A stretch of 64,000 nt of DNA, taken from Macrostomum lignano. Taxonomy: Eukaryota. The stretch covers positions 682,001 to 746,000 of the forward strand of contig NIVC01000052.1 of the NCBI GenBank assembly GCA_002269645.1. The letters run 5' to 3'. Every line of letters begins with the position of its first letter. The stretch's first letter is position 1. The notes under the pieces were generated by a model. The model was not told the origin of the DNA. It made no database searches and saw nothing but the letters and a program-made list of their open reading frames with translations. The position numbers were made by a program, and so were the translations under genes. This document shows positions 5,985-62,714 of the stretch, piece after piece.

Positions 5985-6565
5985 AAGGAATCGCCCTCCT
6001 GACCCACCAAGGAATCGCTCTCCTGATCCACCAAGGAATCCCCTGCTGACCCACCAAGGAATCGCCCTCCTGACCCACCAAGGAATCGCCCTCCTGACCC
6101 ACCAAGGAATCGCTCTCCTGACCCACCAAGGAATCGCCCTCCTGACCCACCAAGAAATCGCTCTGTTGACCCACCAAGAAATCGCTCTGTTGACCCACCA
6201 AAGAATCCCCTGCTGACCCACCAAGAAATCGCTCTGTTGACCCACCAAAGAATCCCCTGCTGACCCACCAAGAAATCGCTCTGTTGACCCACCAAGGAAT
6301 CCCCTGCTGACCCACCAAGGAATCGCCCTCCTGACCCACCAAGGAATCGCCCTCCTGACCCACCAACGAAGTGCCCCCTGACCCACCAAGGAATCGCCCT
6401 CCTGACCCACCAAGGAATCGCCCTCCTGACCCACCAAGGAATCGCCCTTCTGACCCACCAAAGAATCGCCCTCAAGACCCACCAAGGAATCCCCTGCTGA
6501 CCCACCAAGGAATCGCCTGCTGACCCAGCAAGAAATCGCTCTGCTGACCCACCAAGGAATCGCCC
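5985..6565 (+). repeat. 23/24-bp tandem array
   Basis: Unit atcgccctcctgacccaccaagga with variants. Confidence 0.95.
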
Positions 6566-12999: not shown

Positions 13000-42530
<29,531 letters not shown>

Positions 42531-43664
42531 CGACCGATCGATGGCCCTCCTCTGCCTATATAAGACTGTGGAGCCGGCCATTCTAAGCGGGGGGAATTTG
42601 GTCCAGCGGTCAGCGCAGCCGCCTTACAACTGCAGGACCCGAGCTCGAATCTTCGGCCTTGGAATAACACAAAATTTGGTTGCGGCTTGAAAAAAATTCC
42701 CTCACATAGACGTACCTTACTACTCGTGGGTAGACAGTCTCTGATAAATGCGAGTAGCAAAAGTTTCCAAAAGGGCCTGCATCCGTGGGAAATCTCTGCT
42801 CTCTTGACTGTGTTTAAAATTCCTTCCCATCGATTCATTCGTCCTTGATGAGTTGCGTTCATCCGGATTCTCGAGGCTTTTGTACAGGTTGATAAATAAT
42901 TCTGCACCCTCTGAAACGCTGAAAACAATTAGAGAATTCTAGCTCACTTGCACATGCTACTTAGAAGTAAATTGTCAGTAGTAAAGCCTGCTCGGGTATG
43001 CCACTTATCCGATGTTGATAGCAAAGATTTGTGTACAACCAGTTATTTGCATAAAATTTAAAGTATCAGAATGCTTCCATCTGAAAATTTCAACTCTTAT
43101 CATATCCCAATGCAGCTACTACTGGTGAGTAGTCAAGTTAAAATGAGTTTTTTATTGATATCAAATAAATTTTTCCTACTATGGTAAAGCTGAATCGAAT
43201 GAGCGTGCGTATTTGTTTAAAAAAATTTTCCAGTCAAAGAAAAGTTTCCAACTCAACATATCGGCGTATTGTGTTTTATCTTGGATTTGGCACACGAAAA
43301 TGGAATATTGTTATTGTATTGTTAGGATATGTGTTAATATATGTGTTAAAATAAATCATATCACCTAGCTCGCATAGACTACTGTCAGTAAGGCATTGAG
43401 ACATTCCTACGAGTATTTGGGTAAAATTTACTTGCGCCGCAAGCTGATTGAAGAAGACAATGGTTGCTTCCGTTCTTGGAGTACTTGAGTTAGATATTGT
43501 CAATAAATTTTCCGAAAAATAAACTTTAAAAAATAAATAGAAAATTATTTACCAAAAGGCAGCCTAAAAAACACAAAAACACATCATCACTACTCAGAAA
43601 AACAGTAGTATGTCACGGACTCTGGAAGAGCACTGAGTGGCGAAAAAATAAATGAAATGTTTGA

Positions 43665-44325
43665 GATCCCAATAGTGAGGCTGGGAGATCCCACTGATGA
43701 GGCTGAGAGATCCCGATGATGAGGCTGTGAGATCCCACTGATGAGGCTGGGAGATCCCAATGATGAGGCTGTGAGATCCTATTGATGAGGCTGGGAGATC
43801 CCACTGATGAGGCTGGGAGATCCCAATGATGAGGCTGTGAGATCCTATTGATGAGGCTGGGAAATCCCACTGATGAGGCTGGGAGATCCCGATGATGAGG
43901 CTGTGAGATCCCACTGATGAGGCTGGGAGATCCCAATGATGAGGCTGTGAGATCCTATTGATGAGGCTGGGAGATCCCAATGATGAGGCTGTGAGATCCT
44001 ACTGATGAGGCTGGGAGATCCCAATGATGAGGCTGTGAGATCCTATTGATGAGGCTGGGAGATCCCAATGATGAGGCTGTGAGATCTTACTGATGAGGCT
44101 GGGAGATCCCAATGATGAAGCTGTGAGATCCCATTGATGAGGCTGTGAGATCCCAGTGATGAGGCACAGAGATCAAAATGATGAGGCAGAGATATCAAAT
44201 GATGAGGCTGGGAGATCCCAGTGATGAGGCTGTGAGACTCCAATGATGAGGCAGAGATATCAAAATGATGAGGCTGGGAGATCCCAGTGATGAGGCAGAG
44301 AGATCCCAATGATGCGGCTGAGATA
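43665..44325 (+). repeat. 22-bp array with alternating 44-bp dimer
   Basis: gatgaggctgggagatcccaat / gatgaggctgtgagatcctatt. Confidence 0.94.
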
Positions 44326-44453: not shown

Positions 44454-47079
44454 CTAACAGGCTCCGCAGTTGGCGCCACCGCCTCCACCGCCGCCGCCGC
44501 CGCCGCCCGAGTGACCAACGCTGGTCCGCTTGCTGCGTTTGATGGGCAGCCGGCTCTTATCCAGCGACAGATCGATGCGCAGCATCACCAGATCCAGCAG
44601 CTTGTCTATGGCCGGCTTCACGTTCTCACCTGTGCAAGCGCTGGTCTCCAGGTAGGGCATGCTTGATGGGGGGGGGGTTGGGTGATTTCCACATTGTCAC
44701 ACGGATATCAATATTCCAATGTCACACCTAATGTCACACGGAAATCGATATCCCATGTCACTCCTAATGTCACACGGAAATCGATATCCCAATGTCACTC
44801 CTAATGTCACACGGAAATCGATATCCGAATGTCACTCCTAATGTCACACGGAAATCAATATCCCAATGTCACTCCTAATGTCACACGGAAATCGATATCC
44901 CAATGTCACTCCTAATGTCACACGGAAATCGATATTCCAATGTCCCACCTAATGTCACACGGAAATCGATATCCCATGTCACTCCTAATGTCACACGGAA
45001 ATCGATATCCCATGTCACTCCTAATGTCACACAGAAATCAATATTCCAAAGTCACTCCTAGTGTCACACGGAAATCGATATCCCATGTCACTCCTAATGT
45101 CACACGGAAATCGATATCCCATGTCACTCCTAATGTCACACGGAAATCAATATTCCAAAGTCACTCCTAATGTCACACGGAAGTCAATATTCCAAAGTCA
45201 CTCCTAATGTCACACGGAAATCAATATTCCAAAGTCACTCCTAATGTCACACGGAAATCAATATTCCAAAGTCACTCCTAATGTCACACAAAAGTCAATA
45301 TTCCAAAGTCACTCCTAATGTCACACGGAAGTCAATATTCCAAAGTCACTCCTAATGTCACACGGAAATCAATATTCCAAAGTCACTCCTAATGTCACAC
45401 GGAAGTCAATATTCCAAAGTCACTCCTAATGTCACACGGAAATCAATATTCCAAAGTCACTCCTAATGTCACACGGAAATCAATATTCCAAAGTCACTCC
45501 TAATGTCACACGGAAATCAATATTCCAAAGTCACTCCTAATGTCACACGGAAGTCAATATTCCAAAGTCACTCCTAATGTCACACGGAAATCAATATTCC
45601 AAAGTCACTCCTAATGTCACACGGAAGTCAATATTCCAAAGTCACTCCTAATGTCACACGGAAATCAATATTCCAAAGTCACTCCTAATGTCACACGGAA
45701 ATCAATATTCCAAAGTCACGCCTAATGTCACGGAAATCGATATCCCATGTCACTCCTAATGTCACACGGAAATCAATATTCCAAAGTCACTCCTAATGTC
45801 ACACGGAAATCAATACCCCAATGTCACTTCTAGTGTCACACGGAAGTCAATATATTCCAATGTCACTTCTAGTGTCACACGGAAGTCAATACATTCCAAT
45901 GTCTCTCCTAGTGTCACACGGAAGTCAATATATTCCAATGTCACTTCTAGTGTCACACGGAACTCAATATCTTGATGCCACTCCAAGTGATGCCAAATGT
46001 CACTCCGGTACTGGATATCTGAATGTCACTCAATAGTCACCCTGACTTTCACTCCAATGTCACTCCAAACATTTCCCAACGTCACAGCCAGGCAGCCAAG
46101 TGCTCACTTGAGCTCGTCCGCCAGCCGCTGTGCCCTGTCGCAGGTGACGGCTCGCAGGTCAGCCAGGTCCTTCTTGTTGCCAACCAGCACAATGTCCGGT
46201 CTGTCGCAGTACGCGTTTGTCTGCAGCAGGCTCAGCCAGTTGCGAATGTCCAGGAAGCTCTGCTCAGAGGTCAGGTCGAACACCAGCAGGAAGCCCATGG
46301 CGTCGCGAAAGAAGGCGGTGCTCAGTGAGCGGAACCTCTCTTGGCCTGCCGTGTCCCTGCGGGCAGGCAGCAATGACTTTGATATTCGCAGAGGAGCAGG
46401 GAACAGGAACTCAGTTCACACATCCAAAGTCAGCGACTAAATCTGACGGCAAACACGTCGTACCAACCAGATTCCACATCATAGCAACCAGATTCCACAC
46501 CATAGCAACCAGATTCCACACCATATCAACTAGATTCAACACCCTAGAAACCAGATCCTACACCCTAGCAACCAGATTCCACACCCTAGCAACCAGATTC
46601 CACACCCTAGAAACCAGATTCCACACCCTAGAAACCAGATCCTACACCCTAGAAACCAGATCCTACACCCTAGCAACCAAGTTTACCACCTTAGCAACCA
46701 GATCCTACGCGATAGCAACCAAGTTCAGCACCCTAGCAACAAGTTCTAACACCTAAAAAACCAGATTAAAAACCCTAGCAACCAAATCCCGCATACCCAT
46801 AACCCCAGGCAACCAAGCGCCAAAAGCAACCAAAACCAACCACAGCTGCAGGTGAATCCGCTGAGTCTCCCCAGACTGCCCGTTGCCGTCAGATTTGTGC
46901 AGCAGCCTCTTCTGCCTAAAATCGATTCCAACTGTGCTGACAAATCTGGCATTGAAGACTCCGTCAGTGTACTGGTAGAGAATCGAGGTCTTGCCTACCC
47001 CCGAGTTGCCCAGGGCCAGCAGTTTGATCAGGTAATCATAATCGTCGGAGTATTTGCCGCCCCAGGAGCCGCTGGCAGC
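44454..47079 (-). CDS. RAB27: Rab27-like small GTPase, exons 47079-46841, 46356-46108, 44661-44454; no genomic ATG found in frame
   Basis: [41 protein letters not shown]|[53 protein letters not shown]. Both junctions are phase 2, and the total of 696 nt is in frame. Confidence 0.93.
44695..46070 (+). repeat. 37-bp array filling Rab27 intron 2
   Basis: Unit gtcacacggaaatcaatattccaaagtcactcctaat. Confidence 0.96.
46460..46790 (+). repeat. 21-23-bp array in Rab27 intron 1
   Basis: Unit accctagcaaccagattccacac with variants. Confidence 0.9.
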
Positions 47080-47159
47080 CTGAAATTCGAGCGGGACCGT
47101 TGTGAGCGGCTGCAGTGTGCCAATGCAGTCAGCGGGCGAATGCTGTTCTGGCTATTCTA

Positions 47160-47209
47160 CAGACAGACAAACAGAGACAGGCAGACAGAAGACAGACAGA
47201 AAGACAGCC

Positions 47210-47250
<41 letters not shown>

Positions 47251-47251
47251 C

Positions 47252-47312
<61 letters not shown>

Positions 47313-47373
47313 GAGAAAGACAGACAGACACTAAGACAGACAGATAGACAGACAGATAGACAGACAGACACTA

Positions 47374-47460
<87 letters not shown>

Positions 47461-47479
47461 TAGACAGACAGACAGACAC

Positions 47480-47518
<39 letters not shown>

Positions 47519-47598
47519 CAGACACTAGGACAGACAAACAGACAGACAGACACTAGGACAGACACACAGACAGACACACAGACAGACAGACAGACGGA
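47160..47598 (+). repeat. (GACA)n tract between Bora and Rab27
   Basis: Direct reading; (TCTG)n on the sense strand. Confidence 0.96.
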
Positions 47599-47972
47599 CA
47601 ACTAATTTCATCAACATTAAAAAAGAATTCTACTCTCTAATTTTCTAGTACAAATATATTAAAAAACAAACGCATTCAATTCTGCCTACTTAAAGTAGCA
47701 GATTTTGTATATTTGATATACGGAGCACAAGTTTAATTGGCCAAGACCGGATTGTATATAGTCGAGTATCTTGCTGCAGCTCGCATTCGCAAGCGGACAG
47801 CCATAAACTCAGATTGAAGCTGAAAGAAGGTAAAGTTTAAATGCAGAAAAGCACTAGAAGGATTGCATATTACAGGTTCCTAAAAAATAGACAAATCCCA
47901 ACAGAGAAGCACTGAGACCAATATAAAAAACAGAGCATAACAGATTCAATGATTTGACAAATGCCTCGAAAA

Positions 47973-50861
47973 TCAAGTTGGCGTCAGCAGGGCGTCTTCA
48001 AAGTTCGCCGACGCTGTCCCAGAAGGTTGGTCAACAGCCGCAAACGCATTCGCCGCTGTTGCCAGCTGCCCGCCAGCAGTGGGGGTGGCAACCAGATCCG
48101 ACATGGAGCCTGACGAGCCAGTTAAAAAACTGCTGCCATCTCCGTAACTGGAGGCGGCCATTCTCTGCTGCTGCTGCTGCTGCTGCTGCTGCAGGCTGCT
48201 GGTGCAGAACACGCTGGCCGGCTGCGAGTCGGAAGTTGTGTCCATGCTGCAGTAGCTGCGATGCAAGGGGAGCCAAACGGTTGATTTTCATGTACACACG
48301 ATTCCCCTGCCCCAATGTACACACGCTCCCCCTGCCCCAATGTACACACGCTACCCCTGCCCCCAATGTACACACGCCCCCCCTGCCCCAATGTACACAC
48401 GCTCCCCCTGCCCCAATGTACACACGCTTCCCCTGCCCCCAATGTACACACGCTCCCCCTGCCCCCAATGTACACACGCTCCCCCTGCCCCAATGTACAC
48501 ACGCTTCCTCTGCCCCCAATGTACACACGCTTCCTCTGCCCCCAATGTACACACGTTCCCTCTGCCCCCAATGTACACACGGTCCTCCTGCCCCCAATGT
48601 ACACACGGTCCTCCTGCCCCCAATGTACACAGGCTCCCTCTGCCCCAATGTACACAGGCTCCCCCTGCCCCCAATGTACACACGGTCCTCCTGCCCCCAA
48701 TGTACACAGGCTCCCTCTGCCCCCCCAATGTAGACACGCTTCCCCTGCCCCCAATGTACACAGGCTCCCTCTGCCCCCCCAATGTAGACACGCTTCCCCT
48801 GCCCCCAATGTACACACGCTAATCCTGCCCCAATGTATACACGCTTCCTCTGTCCCAATGTACACACGCTCCCTCTGCCTCCAATGTAGACACGCTTCCT
48901 CTGTCCCAATTTACACGGGCTCCCTATGCCCCTAATGTATACGCGCTCCCTCTGCCCCAATGTACACATATGCCACTCACGAACGCTCTCTGATAACCTC
49001 CATAGGCTGAAAGTTTGGCTGTAGTTTCGGCCGAGTCTGCTGGCCAAGCTGCGGACTGCCGCTGCTAGGCAAAACCTGAAACGCCTTGACAACGCGATCC
49101 GGCGTCAATGGCAACTGCGAAATCTGCAGCGGTGGCGACGGTCGCACGGGACTGGACTCAGCCGCCCAGTCAGCGGCCGGCTCGCCGCAGCAATTGTTCG
49201 TCCCTCCATCATCATTGTCAGATATGATAGCGGCGAGATCAAAGAAGGCCGGGATAGACAGTATTGTCTGAGTGGACACTGCGGGAAAAAAGCGTAAATG
49301 TATGTTGAGGGGAAGGGCGTGTGTACATTGGGGGCAGAGGGAGCGTGTGTACATTGGGGGCAGAGGGAGCGTGTGTACATTGGGGGCAGAGGGAGCGTGT
49401 GTACATTGGGGGCAGAGGAAGCGTGTGTACATTGGGACAGAGGAAGCGTGTGTACATTGGGGGCAGAGGGAGCGTGTGTACATTGGGGGCAGAGGGAGCG
49501 TGTGTACATTGGGGCAGAGGGAGCGTGTGTACATTGGGGGCAGGAGGAGCGTGTGTACATTAGGGGCAGGGGAGCGTGTGTACATTGGGGGCAGAGGGAG
49601 CGTGTGTACATTGGGGGCAGAGGGAGCGTGTGTACATTAGGGGCAGGGGGAGCGTGTGTACATTGGGGGCAGAGGGAGCGTGTGTACATTGGGGGTAGAG
49701 GGAGCGTGTGTACATTGGGGGCAGAGGGAGCGTGTGTACATTGGGGCAGAGGGAGCATGTGTACATTGGGGGCAGAAGGAGCGTGTGTACATTAAGGGGC
49801 AGGGGAGCGTGTGTACATTGGGGGCAGAGGGAGCGTGTGTACATTGGGGGCAGAGGGAGCGTGTGTACATTAGGGGCAGGGGGAGCGTGTGTACATTGGG
49901 GGCAGAGGGAGCGTGTGTACATTGGGGGCAGAGGGAGCGTGTGTACATTGGGGGCAGAGGGAGCGTGTGTACATTGGGGGCAGACGGAGCGTGTGTACAT
50001 TAGGGGCAGGGGGAGCGTGTGTACATTGGGGGCAGAGGGAGCGTGTGTACATTGGGGTAGAGATAGAGTGTTTTGATTGTGGGTAATATGACGAGTTTAA
50101 ACTACAGAGGGATTGTGTATACATTGGGGCAGGGTTAAGAGGGCGTGTGTACATTAGGGAAGAGGGTGTGTGTACATGGGCGAAGAGAGCGTGTACATAT
50201 GAGGTGGTGGGGGTTTCGCAGCAAGTTCGCACCGTTCCACTTGGGCGCACACTCGGTGCCGCTGTCTACGTGCGGCTCCTCCGGTCGGCTCCGGCCGCCT
50301 CCTTTGCCGTTATCAAAACCGGCCGGAGAAGGCGCCACAATCTGGGACTTGAAGTATGCCTCGATGGCGTCCTGCACGCCGAACTGCGAGTCCCAGTGTG
50401 CCGTTAGGCGAGCGCTATAAGCCTCCTGTTTAAGCGCTGTCTCCTCCGAGCTGTCAATCTGGTCGGGGCAAACCCGAGCCCGATGGTCCGGCGATAGAGT
50501 TGCGGCGGCGGCTGCTGCGGCAGCGGCGGCGGTGGCAGCGGCCACGGCGGCGGTCGGGGCGAAGATGCCGGGGCTGACGGTGATGCCGCCGTTCCAGCCG
50601 CTGCAGCCGCCGCCTGCCAGGCCGGCGCTGGCCTCCCAGCGCAGGAAGGGATTGTAGTAGCGGGCACCGCTGGGTGTGCGCAGGCTGACGTCGCTGATGG
50701 CGCCTCCGGGTCCGTGGCTGTACAGCAGCTCGTAGCCGCCGTTGTGCTGCTGCTGATCAGCCTGCTGCTGCTGCTGCTGCTGTTTTGTCGGAGTGCTTGA
50801 ACTGAAATTTTGTTTGAGCATTTTGCGGCTCAATGCATTTGGTGAAATAGCTGCATTGCGT

Positions 50862-50894
<33 letters not shown>

Positions 50895-50932
50895 GACAGA
50901 CAGACAGACAGACAGACAGGCAGACAGACAGG

Positions 50933-50974
<42 letters not shown>

Positions 50975-50975
50975 C

Positions 50976-51020
<45 letters not shown>

Positions 51021-51023
51021 AAC

Positions 51024-51054
<31 letters not shown>

Positions 51055-51233
51055 CACAGACAGACAGACAGACAGTACCAACTAACCTACCTGAATTTGC
51101 TGGGCGAGAGGCCGGCAGCAGCGCTGCTGTTATCGCAGGCAGAGAGCTGCTGCTGCTGCTGTGACGCCTGCAGAGATTCCACAGTCAGCTCGCAGTCGCT
51201 GGTTGCCATGCAGATGTCTCCCTGGGAGTCCAT
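47973..51233 (-). CDS. BORA: Protein aurora borealis (Bora)-like, exons 51233-51091, 50801-50233, 49278-48981, 48255-47973; 430 aa
   Basis: GT-AG junctions in phases 2/1/2, total 1293 nt in frame. Ordered motif match to the Bora N-terminal domain as recalled: YYNPF (NPF), VSPGIF (SPSVF), [14 protein letters not shown] (SIDQLAVINPVEID), [17 protein letters not shown] (QKAIEEFFTKDVIVPSP), [13 protein letters not shown] (CQTLLSLPVDFNL). Confidence 0.8.
48290..48970 (+). repeat. 25-28-bp array in Bora intron 3
   Basis: Unit cccctgcccc(c)aatgtacacacgctc. Confidence 0.95.
49315..50190 (+). repeat. Same 27-28-bp family, inverted, in Bora intron 2
   Basis: Unit gagcgtgtgtacattgggggcagagg. Confidence 0.95.
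50863..51075 (+). repeat. (GACA)n in Bora intron 1
   Basis: Direct reading. Confidence 0.95.
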
Positions 51234-51269
51234 GAAATTTTCTGGAGTAAACGCCGAAAAGTACAGGTA

Positions 51270-53035
51270 TTCACTACGGGATTATTCAAAATCCACTACG
51301 GGATCATTCAATATCCACTACGGGATCATTCAGTATCCACTACGGGATCATTCAATATCCACTACGGGATCATTCATTATTCACTATGGGATCATTCATT
51401 ATTCACTATGGGATCATTCATTATTCACTATGGGATCATTCAATATCCACTATGGGATCATTCAATATCCACTATGGGATCATTCATTATTCACTATGGG
51501 ATCATTCATTATTCACTATGGGATCATTCATTATTCACTATGGGATTATTCATTATTCACTATGGGATCATTCAATATCCACTATGGGATCATTCAATAT
51601 CCACTATGGGATCATTCATTATTCACTATGGGATCATTCATTATTCACTATGGGATCATTCATTATTCACTATGGGATTATTCATTATCCACTATGGGAT
51701 CATTCATTATTCACTATGGGATCATTCATTATTCACTATGGGATCATTCATTATTCACTATGGGATCATTCATTATTCACTATGGGATCATTCATTATTC
51801 ACTACGGGATCATTCATTATCCACTATGGGATCATTCATTATCCACTATGGGATTATTCATTATCCACTATGGGATCATTCATTATTCACTATGGGATCA
51901 TTCATTATTCACTATGGGATCATTCAATATCCACTATGGGATCATTCAATATCCACTATGGGATCATTCATTATCCACTACGGGATCATTCAGTATCCAC
52001 TATGGGATCATTCAATATCCACTATGGGATCATTCATATTCACTATTCACTATCCACTATCCACTATGGGATCATTCATATTCACTATTCACTATCCACT
52101 ATCCACTATGGGATCATTCATTATTCACTATGGGATTATTCATTATCCACTACGGGATCATTCAGTATCCACTATGGGATCATTCATTATCCACTATGGG
52201 ATTATTCATTATCCACTATGGGATCATTCATTATTCACTATGGGATTATTCATTATCCACTATGGGATTATTCATTATCCACTATGGGATCATTCATTAT
52301 TCACTATGGGATCATTCAATATCCACTATGGGATCATTCAATATCCACTATGGGATCATTCATTATCCACTACGGGATCATTCAGTATCCACTATGGGAT
52401 CATTCATTATCCACTATGGGATTATTCATTATCCACTATGGGATCATTCATTATTCACTATGGGATTATTCATTATCCACTATGGGATTATTCATTATCC
52501 ACTATGGGATCATTCATTATTCACTATGGGATTATTCAATATCCACTATGGGATCATTCATTATCCACTACGGGATCATTCAGTATCCACTATGGGATCA
52601 TTCATTATCCACTATGGGATTATTCATTATCCACTATGGGATCATTCATTATCCACTATGGGATTATTCATTATCCACTATGGGATCATTCATTATCCAC
52701 TATGGGATCATTCAATATCCACTATGGGATCATTCAATATCCACTATGGGATCATTCATATTCACTATTCACTATCCACTATCCACTATGGGATCATTCA
52801 TATTCACTATTCACTATCCACTATCCACTATGGGATCATTCATATTCACTATTCACTATCCACTATCCACTATGGGATCATTCATTATTCACTATGGGAT
52901 CATTCATTATCCACTATGGGATCATTCATTATCCACTATGGGATCATTCATTATCCACTATGGGATCATTCATTATCCACTATGGGATCATTCATTATTC
53001 ACTATGGGATCATTCAATATCCACTATGGGATCAT
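51270..53035 (+). repeat. ~23-bp array between dUTPase and Bora
   Basis: Unit cactatgggatcattcattat(t/c)c, about 75 copies with a recurrent longer variant. Confidence 0.97.
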
Positions 53036-53615: not shown

Positions 53616-54146
53616 TCACTGCATTCCGGTGCTACCGTAGCCGCCAGCTCCGCGAACCGTAGCATCCAGCTCGTCAACTTTAACAGCCGGCGGCGTGGCA
53701 ACCACTTCCAGCACTAGCTGAGCGACTCGATCCCCAACGCTTACTTTGAAGTCCTCGGCGGCGTGATTGAACAGCACAACGCCGACGTTGCCCCGATAGT
53801 CCGGGTCGACAACCCCGGCGCCAACGTCGATGAAGTGCTTGGCGGCCAGGCCTGACCGGGGCGCCACCCGGCCGTAGCAGCCGGGCGGAATGGCCACGGC
53901 CAAATCTGTGGGCACAATTGCCTTGCCCCGGCTAGGGATGCTCATGTCAGCGGCCGAGCACAGGTCGTAGCCAACAGCCCCAGCGGAGCCTCTGACTGGC
54001 GGCCGGGCCTTGTCAGACAGGCACTTGAATAGCAGAGGCTGATGCTGCGGCTGCTGCTGGGGTGACTTGACATTATCGATCTCTGACAGGGCTCGCTTAG
54101 CTGGCGGAATTGGCGAGGCCGATGCGGTGGTCACAGCGTTCTCCAT
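53616..54146 (-). CDS. DUT: dUTP pyrophosphatase, intronless, 176 aa
   Basis: All five dUTPase motifs: [44 protein letters not shown]-terminal [10 protein letters not shown] resembles the nuclear-isoform NLS. Confidence 0.97.
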
Positions 54147-54254
54147 TTTAGTATCAGATGGGCATGCAAAAGTAAGTTTAATAGCAGCCTTGGTTGACTT
54201 GAGTTGTTGGAAAATTGCCCCTGCGATTTAATGAGTATAGGGGGGACATCTTAG

Positions 54255-61560: not shown

Positions 61561-62714
61561 AGTTGCAACCATGATTACTGAACACAGGCACACTGAGAGT
61601 TGGCTCACTCATGTATTGCTGAGATGCAATACATGCGGCACTCGTAATTATCATTATTTTTGTTAGCTATTTCTCCAATGGCATGCCAGCGCCCCGACCG
61701 CAGTTCAGATTTCAGACCCCCCCCCCCTATAGGCAGGCAGTTGCCATGCAAAATCCGGAAGAGTTGTTTTGGTTTGAAGGCCAGAATAGGGGAGGGGGAA
61801 GCAGAGAGAGAGGGGAGAAAGGCACGCGGGAGATTTTCAAATCTCGGCAGACTTTGCGGCTAATCTCGCCATATCATTTCCCTCGGCTGACGTTCAGCCC
61901 CCCTCTATATATATATATCCTATATATGCATGGCCCGGCCGGACACACTTCGAATCAGAGAGAGCTGCTGAGACCGATCAGATCAGATGGGATAACAGAC
62001 AGGCGGCGTGGGGATAGATAAATAGGGGATTTCCGATCAAGCAAAGACGCATCACATTCGCCGGGGGAAGGGGGGGGCAGTATAGAAGCCACAGCCGCTT
62101 GGTTCGTCATCATGGAAGCGACCGTTGCTGCCGACCCCCTCTCAGCTCCCTGTTCCGTTCCACTTCGCGATGTACGCCAATGTGTATGCAGAGAGAGAGA
62201 GAGTACATAGGGTTCAATAAGTATACGACCCCTACCGGAGGGCCACCTACCGCAGTTTAAAATCTGGCTTTCTTAGAAAATAAAATGCACTAAAAGGAAG
62301 GCAGGAGAGCGTATTTTAACACAGGGCATCACTGCACTGGCCTGCATGCAGCAGAGCACTCGAAGCGGATAGCTAGGGGGGGGGGGGTAAAAGATGGCGG
62401 AGGCAGAGAAGAGGAGGCCAGAGGAGAGACGCAGGGAAAGGCGGGAAGCACCAACAAAACAGGAGGCAGTTGGAAACCAGATGAGGATAAATTATTCCCT
62501 ATTATCTGTATAGCCCATCGTTACACTTTATAACCAAACGAAATATTGCATAGAGCCCCAGCACTCGTTTCTCTGCATTCCTGATATTCATATGCACTGT
62601 CTCCTGACAAATGCATATTCAGATAGAAAAATTTACTGATGAAGATGGGGCTTGGGGAATTGCGAAAATGAAATGAAAGCGCATACTCAGAATGCATTAC
62701 TTACACTAGTAGTA

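Follow-up and report, generated by a model that had tools for sequence, protein, structure and literature searches.

A 64,000-nt stretch of Macrostomum lignano DNA (positions 682,001 to 746,000 of contig NIVC01000052.1, forward strand; hereafter the window, numbered from its first letter) carries on its minus strand a Rab27 gene that lacks a start codon of its own and very probably receives its ATG from a trans-spliced leader. The Rab27 open reading frame (ORF) comprised 231 codons over three coding exons, all of whose borders were canonical GT/AG, and ended with ANCGAC and a TAG stop codon (Table 1). In the direction of transcription, the (TCTG)n microsatellite was followed by gtagaatagccagaac...ccgctcgaatttcag/GCT GCC AGC GGC TCC TGG GGC GGC AAA TAC TCC GAC GAT TAT GAT TAC CTG ATC AAA (a slash marks a splice junction). 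The Rab27 frame opened at 47079, in phase 0, directly 3' of the acceptor gaatttcag, whose last base was 47080. An in-frame TAG at 47154–47152, 25 codons upstream of GCT, closed the frame. A script scan of the 571 nt from 47610 to 47040 found no ATG in any of the minus-strand frames, and the nearest ATG (47039, within GAT TAT GAT TAC) was out of frame with Rab27. The first genomic in-frame Met was residue 100 (RDAMGF), which is preceded by the P-loop GNSGVGKT (residues 24–31), by DTAGQE at residue 81 and by switch II. An earlier sequence-only reading of this stretch had claimed the absence of an ATG in any frame between the microsatellite and the Rab27 coding sequence, the closure of the frame by an upstream TAG, and an acceptor gaatttcag opening in phase 0 on GCT GCC AGC; on all three points it was borne out.

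Table 1. Features of the Rab27 locus in the window, and contigs carrying the copies compared
Feature	Position or contig	Strand	Remarks
Rab27 coding exon 1	46841–47079	minus	no own ATG; starts GCT; ends HLQLW; donor TG/gttggt
Rab27 coding exon 2	46108–46356	minus	DTAGQERF...RLADEL; acceptor cccgcag/, donor AA/gtgagc; has first in-frame Met
Rab27 coding exon 3	44454–44661	minus	NMPYLETSA...poly-Gly...ANCGAC; stop TAG 44456–44454; acceptor atcaag/
Acceptor TTTCAG	47080–47085	minus	junction 47080 (G of AG) / 47079 (first exon base); from sequence
Outron segment, unique, 79 nt	47080–47158	minus	non-coding, ATG-free, in-frame TAG 47154–47152
(TCTG)n microsatellite	47159–47600	minus	Tandem Repeats Finder: period 4, 110.8 copies
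432-aa gene, no Pfam match	47973–51241	minus	annotated start right after acceptor ttactccag/ (51242/51241)
dUTPase gene	53616–54169	minus	single 176-codon ORF 54146–53616; trans-splice junction 54163/54162
L001	NIVC01000052.1		window copy of Rab27
L003	NIVC01000600.1		sister copy; 1 synonymous coding difference from window; exon 1 identical to that of window
L002	NIVC01000055.1		homeolog; 12 synonymous, 3 non-synonymous codon differences
L007 and L009	NIVC01001596.1 and NIVC01002725.1		paralogous Rab27 copies

That the 79-nt outron segment contains no ATG is not significant alone, since about half of all 79-nt windows of this sequence contain none. Likewise, a TCTG repeat cannot hold an ATG, so its absence there carries no weight by itself. 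The signal is the combination of a frame closed upstream, an abutting phase-0 acceptor, no in-frame Met before residue 100, and an ORF under selection.

The protein matched the Pfam family Ras (E = 1.5e-48). Its best matches in the PDB were Rab27B and Rab27A (E about 1e-83 to 1e-72), ahead of Rab3 as the next family at 1e-48. The named database relatives were Rab27A/B, with 60–68% identity, all of the GTPase motifs (G1–G5) were intact, and the subfamily test assigned the protein to Rab27. From residue 4 on, the product was identical to the GenBank protein PAA92437.1. The top database hit was from M. lignano, and over 14.6 kb the DNA matched contig NIVC01000052.1 of assembly Mlig_3_7 (GCA_002269645.1) at 100% identity. 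In the hidden-polyploid genome of M. lignano, we found three Rab27 copies of the window type, each with canonical splice sites and free of frameshifts and stop codons. The 12 synonymous versus 3 non-synonymous differences between the homeologs, together with the intact motifs and splice sites, indicate that the ORF is under purifying selection and is not a pseudogene. The 23 residues ahead of the P-loop were identical between homeologs while third codon positions differed (K9 and S11, both synonymous), which argues that the N-terminus is translated. The 79-nt outron contained a 2-nt indel between the homeologous copies that would shift any frame.

The C-terminus of the window protein (44454–44475, minus strand) was ...GGGGANCGAC, with ANCGAC as its end, and that of L002 ended with NCGTC. 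The two cysteines have an unusual C-x-x-C spacing; the paralogous M. lignano Rab27 ends with GCAC and the other retrieved Rab27 sequences with CXC. The C-x-x-C is preceded by a run of 11 glycines from a GGC repeat, and the glycine count is 10 or 11 depending on the copy. Minisatellites with periods of 21–37 nt were dense in the window at 43663–44320, 44695–45970, 46464–46784, 48290–48968 and 49317–49500. They occupied the Rab27 introns, the Rab27 3' flank and the introns of the upstream gene, and intron lengths therefore vary by hundreds of bases among the three copies.

The single published M. lignano spliced leader (SL), CGGTCTCTTACTGCGAAGACTCAATTTATTGCATG, has 35 nt and ends with ...TTGCATG, after which GTAAG follows in the SL RNA gene. 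According to PMC8629364, ~30% of the genes are trans-spliced and ~15% lie in operons, and the trans-splice acceptor motif is [T/C]TNCAG. The donor motif of the species is GT[G/A]AG. According to the Macrostomum genome paper, the terminal ATG of the SL is a translation start codon (PMC10468722), and every reported flatworm SL ends with ATG and is able to supply the start codon (PMC12582326). The premise that flatworm leaders end in AUG, on which the sequence-only reading had relied, thus holds for the M. lignano SL (PMC10468722; PMC8629364). For Schistosoma mansoni, Cheng et al. (2006, cited in PMC9851317 and PMC12582326) found 28% of the trans-spliced mRNAs to carry the SL AUG in frame and more than 40 cDNAs to depend on it. 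An SL RNA gene was not found in the 64-kb window, with up to 3 mismatches allowed.

According to PMC5730564, the TBONE pipeline set the 5' ends of genes in the Mlig_3_7 annotation at peaks of SL-containing reads. Both DNA and RNA-seq reads went into the Pilon polishing of the assembly, and the transcriptome assembly, at least, used STAR in end-to-end mode. The TTTCAG acceptor of the window fits the trans-splice motif. The models PAA92372.1 (L002) and PAA80025.1 (L003) are 5'-partial and begin with AASGSW, and the first base of either gene range is the G of GCT. Because the 5' ends were set from SL reads, the start of the sister-copy models at GCT supports trans-splicing at this junction.

The homeologous copy bears an additional trace of the leader. 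The last 14 nt before the junction read cgctTgaaTGCATG/GCT in L002 and cgctcgaatttcag/GCT in both L001 and L003, and at all five differing positions L002 had the SL base. In L002 (positions 5987–6000), the TGCATG of the SL was fused to GCTGCCAGC exactly at the predicted junction. An older ML2-assembly model of the L002 homeolog type (P0001, with SLTT..., DRNGQ, HPGGG and CGTC) translates the upstream bases as ...PLEFQ, which corresponds to tttcag. SL-bearing reads forced into end-to-end alignment would overwrite exactly these bases. In our reading, the L002 footprint is the imprint of numerous SL-ATG/GCTGCC reads, that is, of RNA in which ...TGCATG had been joined to GCTGCCAGC. For the paralogous Rab27, a Logan RNA contig from a related sample started with ATTTATTGCATG/CTAATCC, showing the 3' end of the SL, and a second Logan contig was unspliced (caatttcag/ctaatcc). 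Trans-splicing at the Rab27 acceptor is strongly, albeit indirectly, supported.

In the mechanism that we propose, the Rab27 pre-mRNA would be the downstream part of a polycistronic transcript, with a 432-aa gene and perhaps a dUTPase gene upstream. The TTTCAG acceptor (47080/47079) would be joined in trans to the 35-nt SL, yielding a mature mRNA with ...UUGCAUG/GCU GCC AGC..., in which phase 0 of the exon would place the leader AUG in frame. The junction of the SL with exon 1 is predicted to read ATTTATTGCATGGCTGCCAGCGGCTCC in RNA, and translation from the leader AUG would produce a complete 232-aa Rab27. When the SL and the coding sequence were joined in silico, the SL AUG was the first AUG, was in frame, and was the only in-frame AUG ahead of the GTPase domain. 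The later AUGs were either out of frame, the first of them opening a 3-codon ORF, or in frame at residue 100. We infer that ribosomes would initiate at the SL AUG and that the window copy itself, whose exon 1 equals that of L003, is expressed. Without trans-splicing, no functional Rab27 would be made from an AUG. The central claim of the sequence-only reading, that Rab27 is trans-spliced and depends on the leader for its Met, is therefore supported by the acceptor motif, the sister-copy models and the L002 footprint, with initiation itself being predicted.

We must also note the observations that weigh against leader-dependent initiation. Neither the 232-aa MAASGSW... protein nor either of its two sister versions had an exact match in a Logan-containing collection. 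A search with the N-terminal 115 aa retrieved a UniProt genomic model in which the outron is translated, but no fragment of transcript origin. For the window copy, the GenBank model PAA92437.1 begins at GSW, 9 nt inside the junction, and a second, out-of-frame AG (gctgccag/C, 47073–47072, minus strand) lies 8 nt inside exon 1. The context of the SL AUG is suboptimal, with T at −3, though with G at +4, and an in-frame CUG (Leu of YLIK) could in principle act as a non-AUG start. Finally, the footprint argument hinges on the TGCATG being a polishing artefact. To see whether RNA contigs carry SL junctions, the 176-aa dUTPase of the window was looked up exactly as well; this control gave no match.

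The GSW start of PAA92437.1 is the next in-frame codon after the inner AG at 47073–47072. As an acceptor (gccag/C), this AG would put the SL ATG out of frame, with a stop after 13 codons; we rejected it as not productive.

The start codon might instead lie in a cis-spliced 5' exon, for which TTTCAG would be a cis acceptor. On the minus strand, ATGs are present at 47675, 47617 and 47611, and the segment ATG TTG ATG AAA TTA/gttgtc (47617–47603) would give M(LM)KL-AASGSW, as ATGAAATTA followed by GT would join GCT in phase. Moreover, cis- and trans-splicing often use the same acceptor sites in parasitic flatworms (PMC12582326). The candidate ATGs, however, lack conservation: in L003 the second of them is ATA and 1 nt is deleted, and L002, divergent over the whole segment, has no TTA/GT, whereas differences in the coding exons are nearly all synonymous. 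The donor GTTGTC misfits the GT[G/A]AG motif of the species, and the segment, which follows AATTAAA, belongs to the 3' untranslated region (UTR) of the upstream gene. In addition, annotated transcripts start at the acceptor, and the imprinted bases are those of the SL and not of an upstream exon. We therefore consider such an exon very unlikely. The sequence-only reading had pointed to 47600–47950 as a place for it; the ATGs there at 47617 and 47611, unconserved and within the 3' UTR, do not overturn its conclusion. A different objection accepts trans-splicing but makes the SL AUG irrelevant, with translation starting at a non-AUG codon or an internal Met, or lets only some ribosomes use the SL AUG. 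The T at −3 and the in-frame CTG for the Leu of YLIK agree with this, and non-AUG initiation on SL-containing mRNAs has been reported in other taxa (PMC9851317). Nevertheless, the SL AUG is first, in frame and followed by G at +4, and the scanning model strongly disfavours downstream non-AUG codons. The 16 residues before YLIK are the same in the homeologs even though the third positions of K9 and S11 differ, and initiation at Met100 would remove the P-loop and both switch regions. Thus, a start elsewhere than at the SL AUG, or its partial use, seems to us unlikely.

Three intact copies with canonical splice sites and with neither frameshift nor stop, 12 synonymous against 3 non-synonymous homeolog differences, and fully preserved GTPase motifs are hard to reconcile with a decaying duplicate that has lost its start codon. 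The same applies to the top scores of Rab27 in the PDB and to the SL imprint on L002, which could not have arisen unless numerous RNA-seq reads came from genes of this type. The idea that the real Rab27 is a paralog with its own ATG (MGDSMIQQ...) takes its appeal from the genomic ATG of this second Rab27 of M. lignano, from the MGDS N-terminus that the latter has in common with Schistosoma, and from the fact that no Logan transcript-derived protein of the window type was found. We regard it as extremely unlikely.

The preferred interpretation, a start codon donated by the SL, has close precedents. In the S. mansoni mRNAs described by Cheng et al. (2006, J Biol Chem 281:733), a flatworm SL ending with AUG also supplies the Met, the acceptor also abuts the coding sequence in phase 0, and no other in-frame AUG is usable. 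The difference is that those mRNAs come from a trematode and the present one from a free-living macrostomorph, that another gene is concerned, and that initiation is here predicted from sequence. The trans-spliced genes and operons of M. lignano share with Rab27 the SL, the acceptor motif, a gene 5' end at the trans-splice site and an upstream same-strand gene at a repeat-adjusted spacing below 1 kb (Wudarski et al. 2017, PMC5730564; Ustyantsev & Berezikov 2021, PMC8629364). The available portions of these two papers contain no discussion of which genes depend on the SL AUG, and GenBank labels such coding sequences as 'partial'. Start codons donated by the SL, and not encoded at the locus, also define the slORFs of nematodes, Oikopleura and trypanosomes (Song et al. 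2023, PMC9851317). These are mostly new or alternative ORFs with a near-cognate NUG, in contrast to the canonical AUG and the main conserved ORF of Rab27.

The M. lignano Rab27 paralog (PAA55647.1 group) belongs to the same family, is 71–73% identical, is older and is also SL trans-spliced, but it starts with MGDSMIQQ. Its acceptor precedes its own ATG by 34 nt, whereas that of the window gene falls inside the would-be N-terminal coding region, and the window gene no longer has an ATG of its own. In the paralog, TGA comes directly after the SL AUG (M. lignano copies), or the SL AUG begins a short upstream ORF (uORF) that is out of frame (Logan RNA contig L006). The Rab27 of Schistosoma has a genomic ATG and the MGDS start common to the M. 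lignano paralog. Since the paralog and Schistosoma keep their own MGDS... start, the ATG of the window Rab27 was apparently lost as the coding start became the site of the trans-splice acceptor.

Several database entries are affected by the missing codon. The UniProt/WormBase models A0A1I8H5M2, A0A1I8ING6, A0A1I8IAD5 and A0A1I8FR67 (P0001, P0124, P0125 and P0129) have no Met and translate the outron, with ...PLEFQ or ...ALEFQ before AASGSW; some of them also keep intron sequence or skip part of an exon. Because of the 2-nt indel between homeologs in the outron, such read-through N-termini are not coding, and the outron-reading models are best regarded as artefacts. We rejected their read-through ORF, which is closed by the TAG, lacks a Met and is interrupted by the indel. 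The GenBank entries PAA92372.1, PAA80025.1 and PAA92437.1 ('5'-partial') and the UniProt entries A0A1I8H5M2, A0A1I8ING6 and A0A1I8IAD5 are mis-modelled, and the GenBank models beginning with AASGSW... would be complete once the SL Met is added. Many other 'partial' proteins of M. lignano are probably complete in the same way. The literature searched contained no mention of the Rab27 gene identifiers Mlig033567, Mlig016730 and Mlig016845. The mechanism has been known in flatworms since 2006; Rab27 would contribute a clear example of obligate use from a free-living model species. The practical by-products, i.e., the mis-modelled entries and the SL-overwritten acceptors in Mlig_3_7, matter more than this instance.

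The genes upstream of Rab27 are compatible with its position in an operon. The 432-aa gene has its own ATG at 51233, with which the SL ATG would be out of frame, a TGA stop codon at 47975–47973, and a candidate poly(A) signal AATTAAA at 47738–47732. From this stop codon to the Rab27 acceptor there are 893 nt, including 442 nt of (TCTG)n; the rest includes the upstream 3' UTR. The microsatellite makes up most of the space between that 3' UTR and the acceptor, and its length differs among the three copies. Adjusted for the repeat, the distance is about 190–450 nt, depending on where the 3' UTR ends. An M. lignano operon is defined by a same-strand upstream gene, a repeat-adjusted spacing of <1 kb and a trans-spliced downstream gene (PMC8629364), and the distance between the 432-aa gene and Rab27 falls within this spacing. 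The same arrangement was found in L003; in L002, the last exon of the upstream gene is present, yet unannotated. The 432-aa gene and Rab27 probably form an operon in which Rab27 is the downstream member.

The dUTPase gene, whose Pfam dUTPase assignment was made on sister gene models, probably heads the same-strand cluster. Between 54162 and 44454 (minus strand), the dUTPase, 432-aa and Rab27 genes are arranged head-to-tail, each directly after an acceptor of the [T/C]TNCAG type, and form a candidate three-gene operon. Their spacers are inflated by tandem repeats, namely an array at ~51300–53020 and (TCTG)n at 47159–47600, and the long spacings among the three genes are due to these repeats only. 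Of the three genes, only Rab27 would need the SL AUG; in the dUTPase and 432-aa genes, the SL AUG either falls out of frame or begins a uORF of 3 codons.

The overwriting of acceptors was not restricted to L002. In some Mlig_3_7 copies, but not in their duplicates, bases of the SL 3' end (...TGCATG) replace AG acceptors. Such a footprint was present at three of the four trans-spliced genes whose 5' ends were examined, and across these three genes all copy differences (14/14) were toward the SL. For the paralogous Rab27, copy L008 reads ccatttcag/TGACTC, whereas L007 and L009 read caaTGCATG/TGACTC (positions 2988–2999). For the dUTPase gene, the window reads cttacttTTGCATG/CCCATCTGATAC (CCCATC...), with TTGCATG at 54169–54163 (minus strand), whereas the duplicate L010 reads cttactttttacag/CCCATCTGATAC. 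A scan of the window for TGCATG found 16 sites, which is not above chance; the dUTPase site was the only one that proved to be a junction footprint.

These footprints are presumably an artefact of Pilon polishing with RNA-seq reads. At the overwritten sites, AG acceptors are destroyed and false genomic ATGs are made, which may mislead gene prediction and promoter or outron analysis. It is highly improbable that the TGCATG copies (L002, L007 and L009, and the window dUTPase) are instead real alleles, in which RNA- or cDNA-templated conversion has copied the 3' end of the SL into the genome. If they were, conversion would turn an SL-AUG-dependent gene into one with a genomic ATG and no acceptor, offering an evolutionary route for hard-wiring start codons donated by the SL.

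Two further sites resembling the 3' end of the SL, ATTTTGCATG, were located at 61745 (minus strand) and 17019 (plus strand). Neither is followed by a convincing ORF, and they may be due to chance or represent further footprints.

Elsewhere in the window, at 40000–40542 (minus strand), an open frame preceded by proline-rich repeats has a sequence that we take to resemble the C-terminal part of the reverse transcriptase of a retrotransposon without long terminal repeats (non-LTR).

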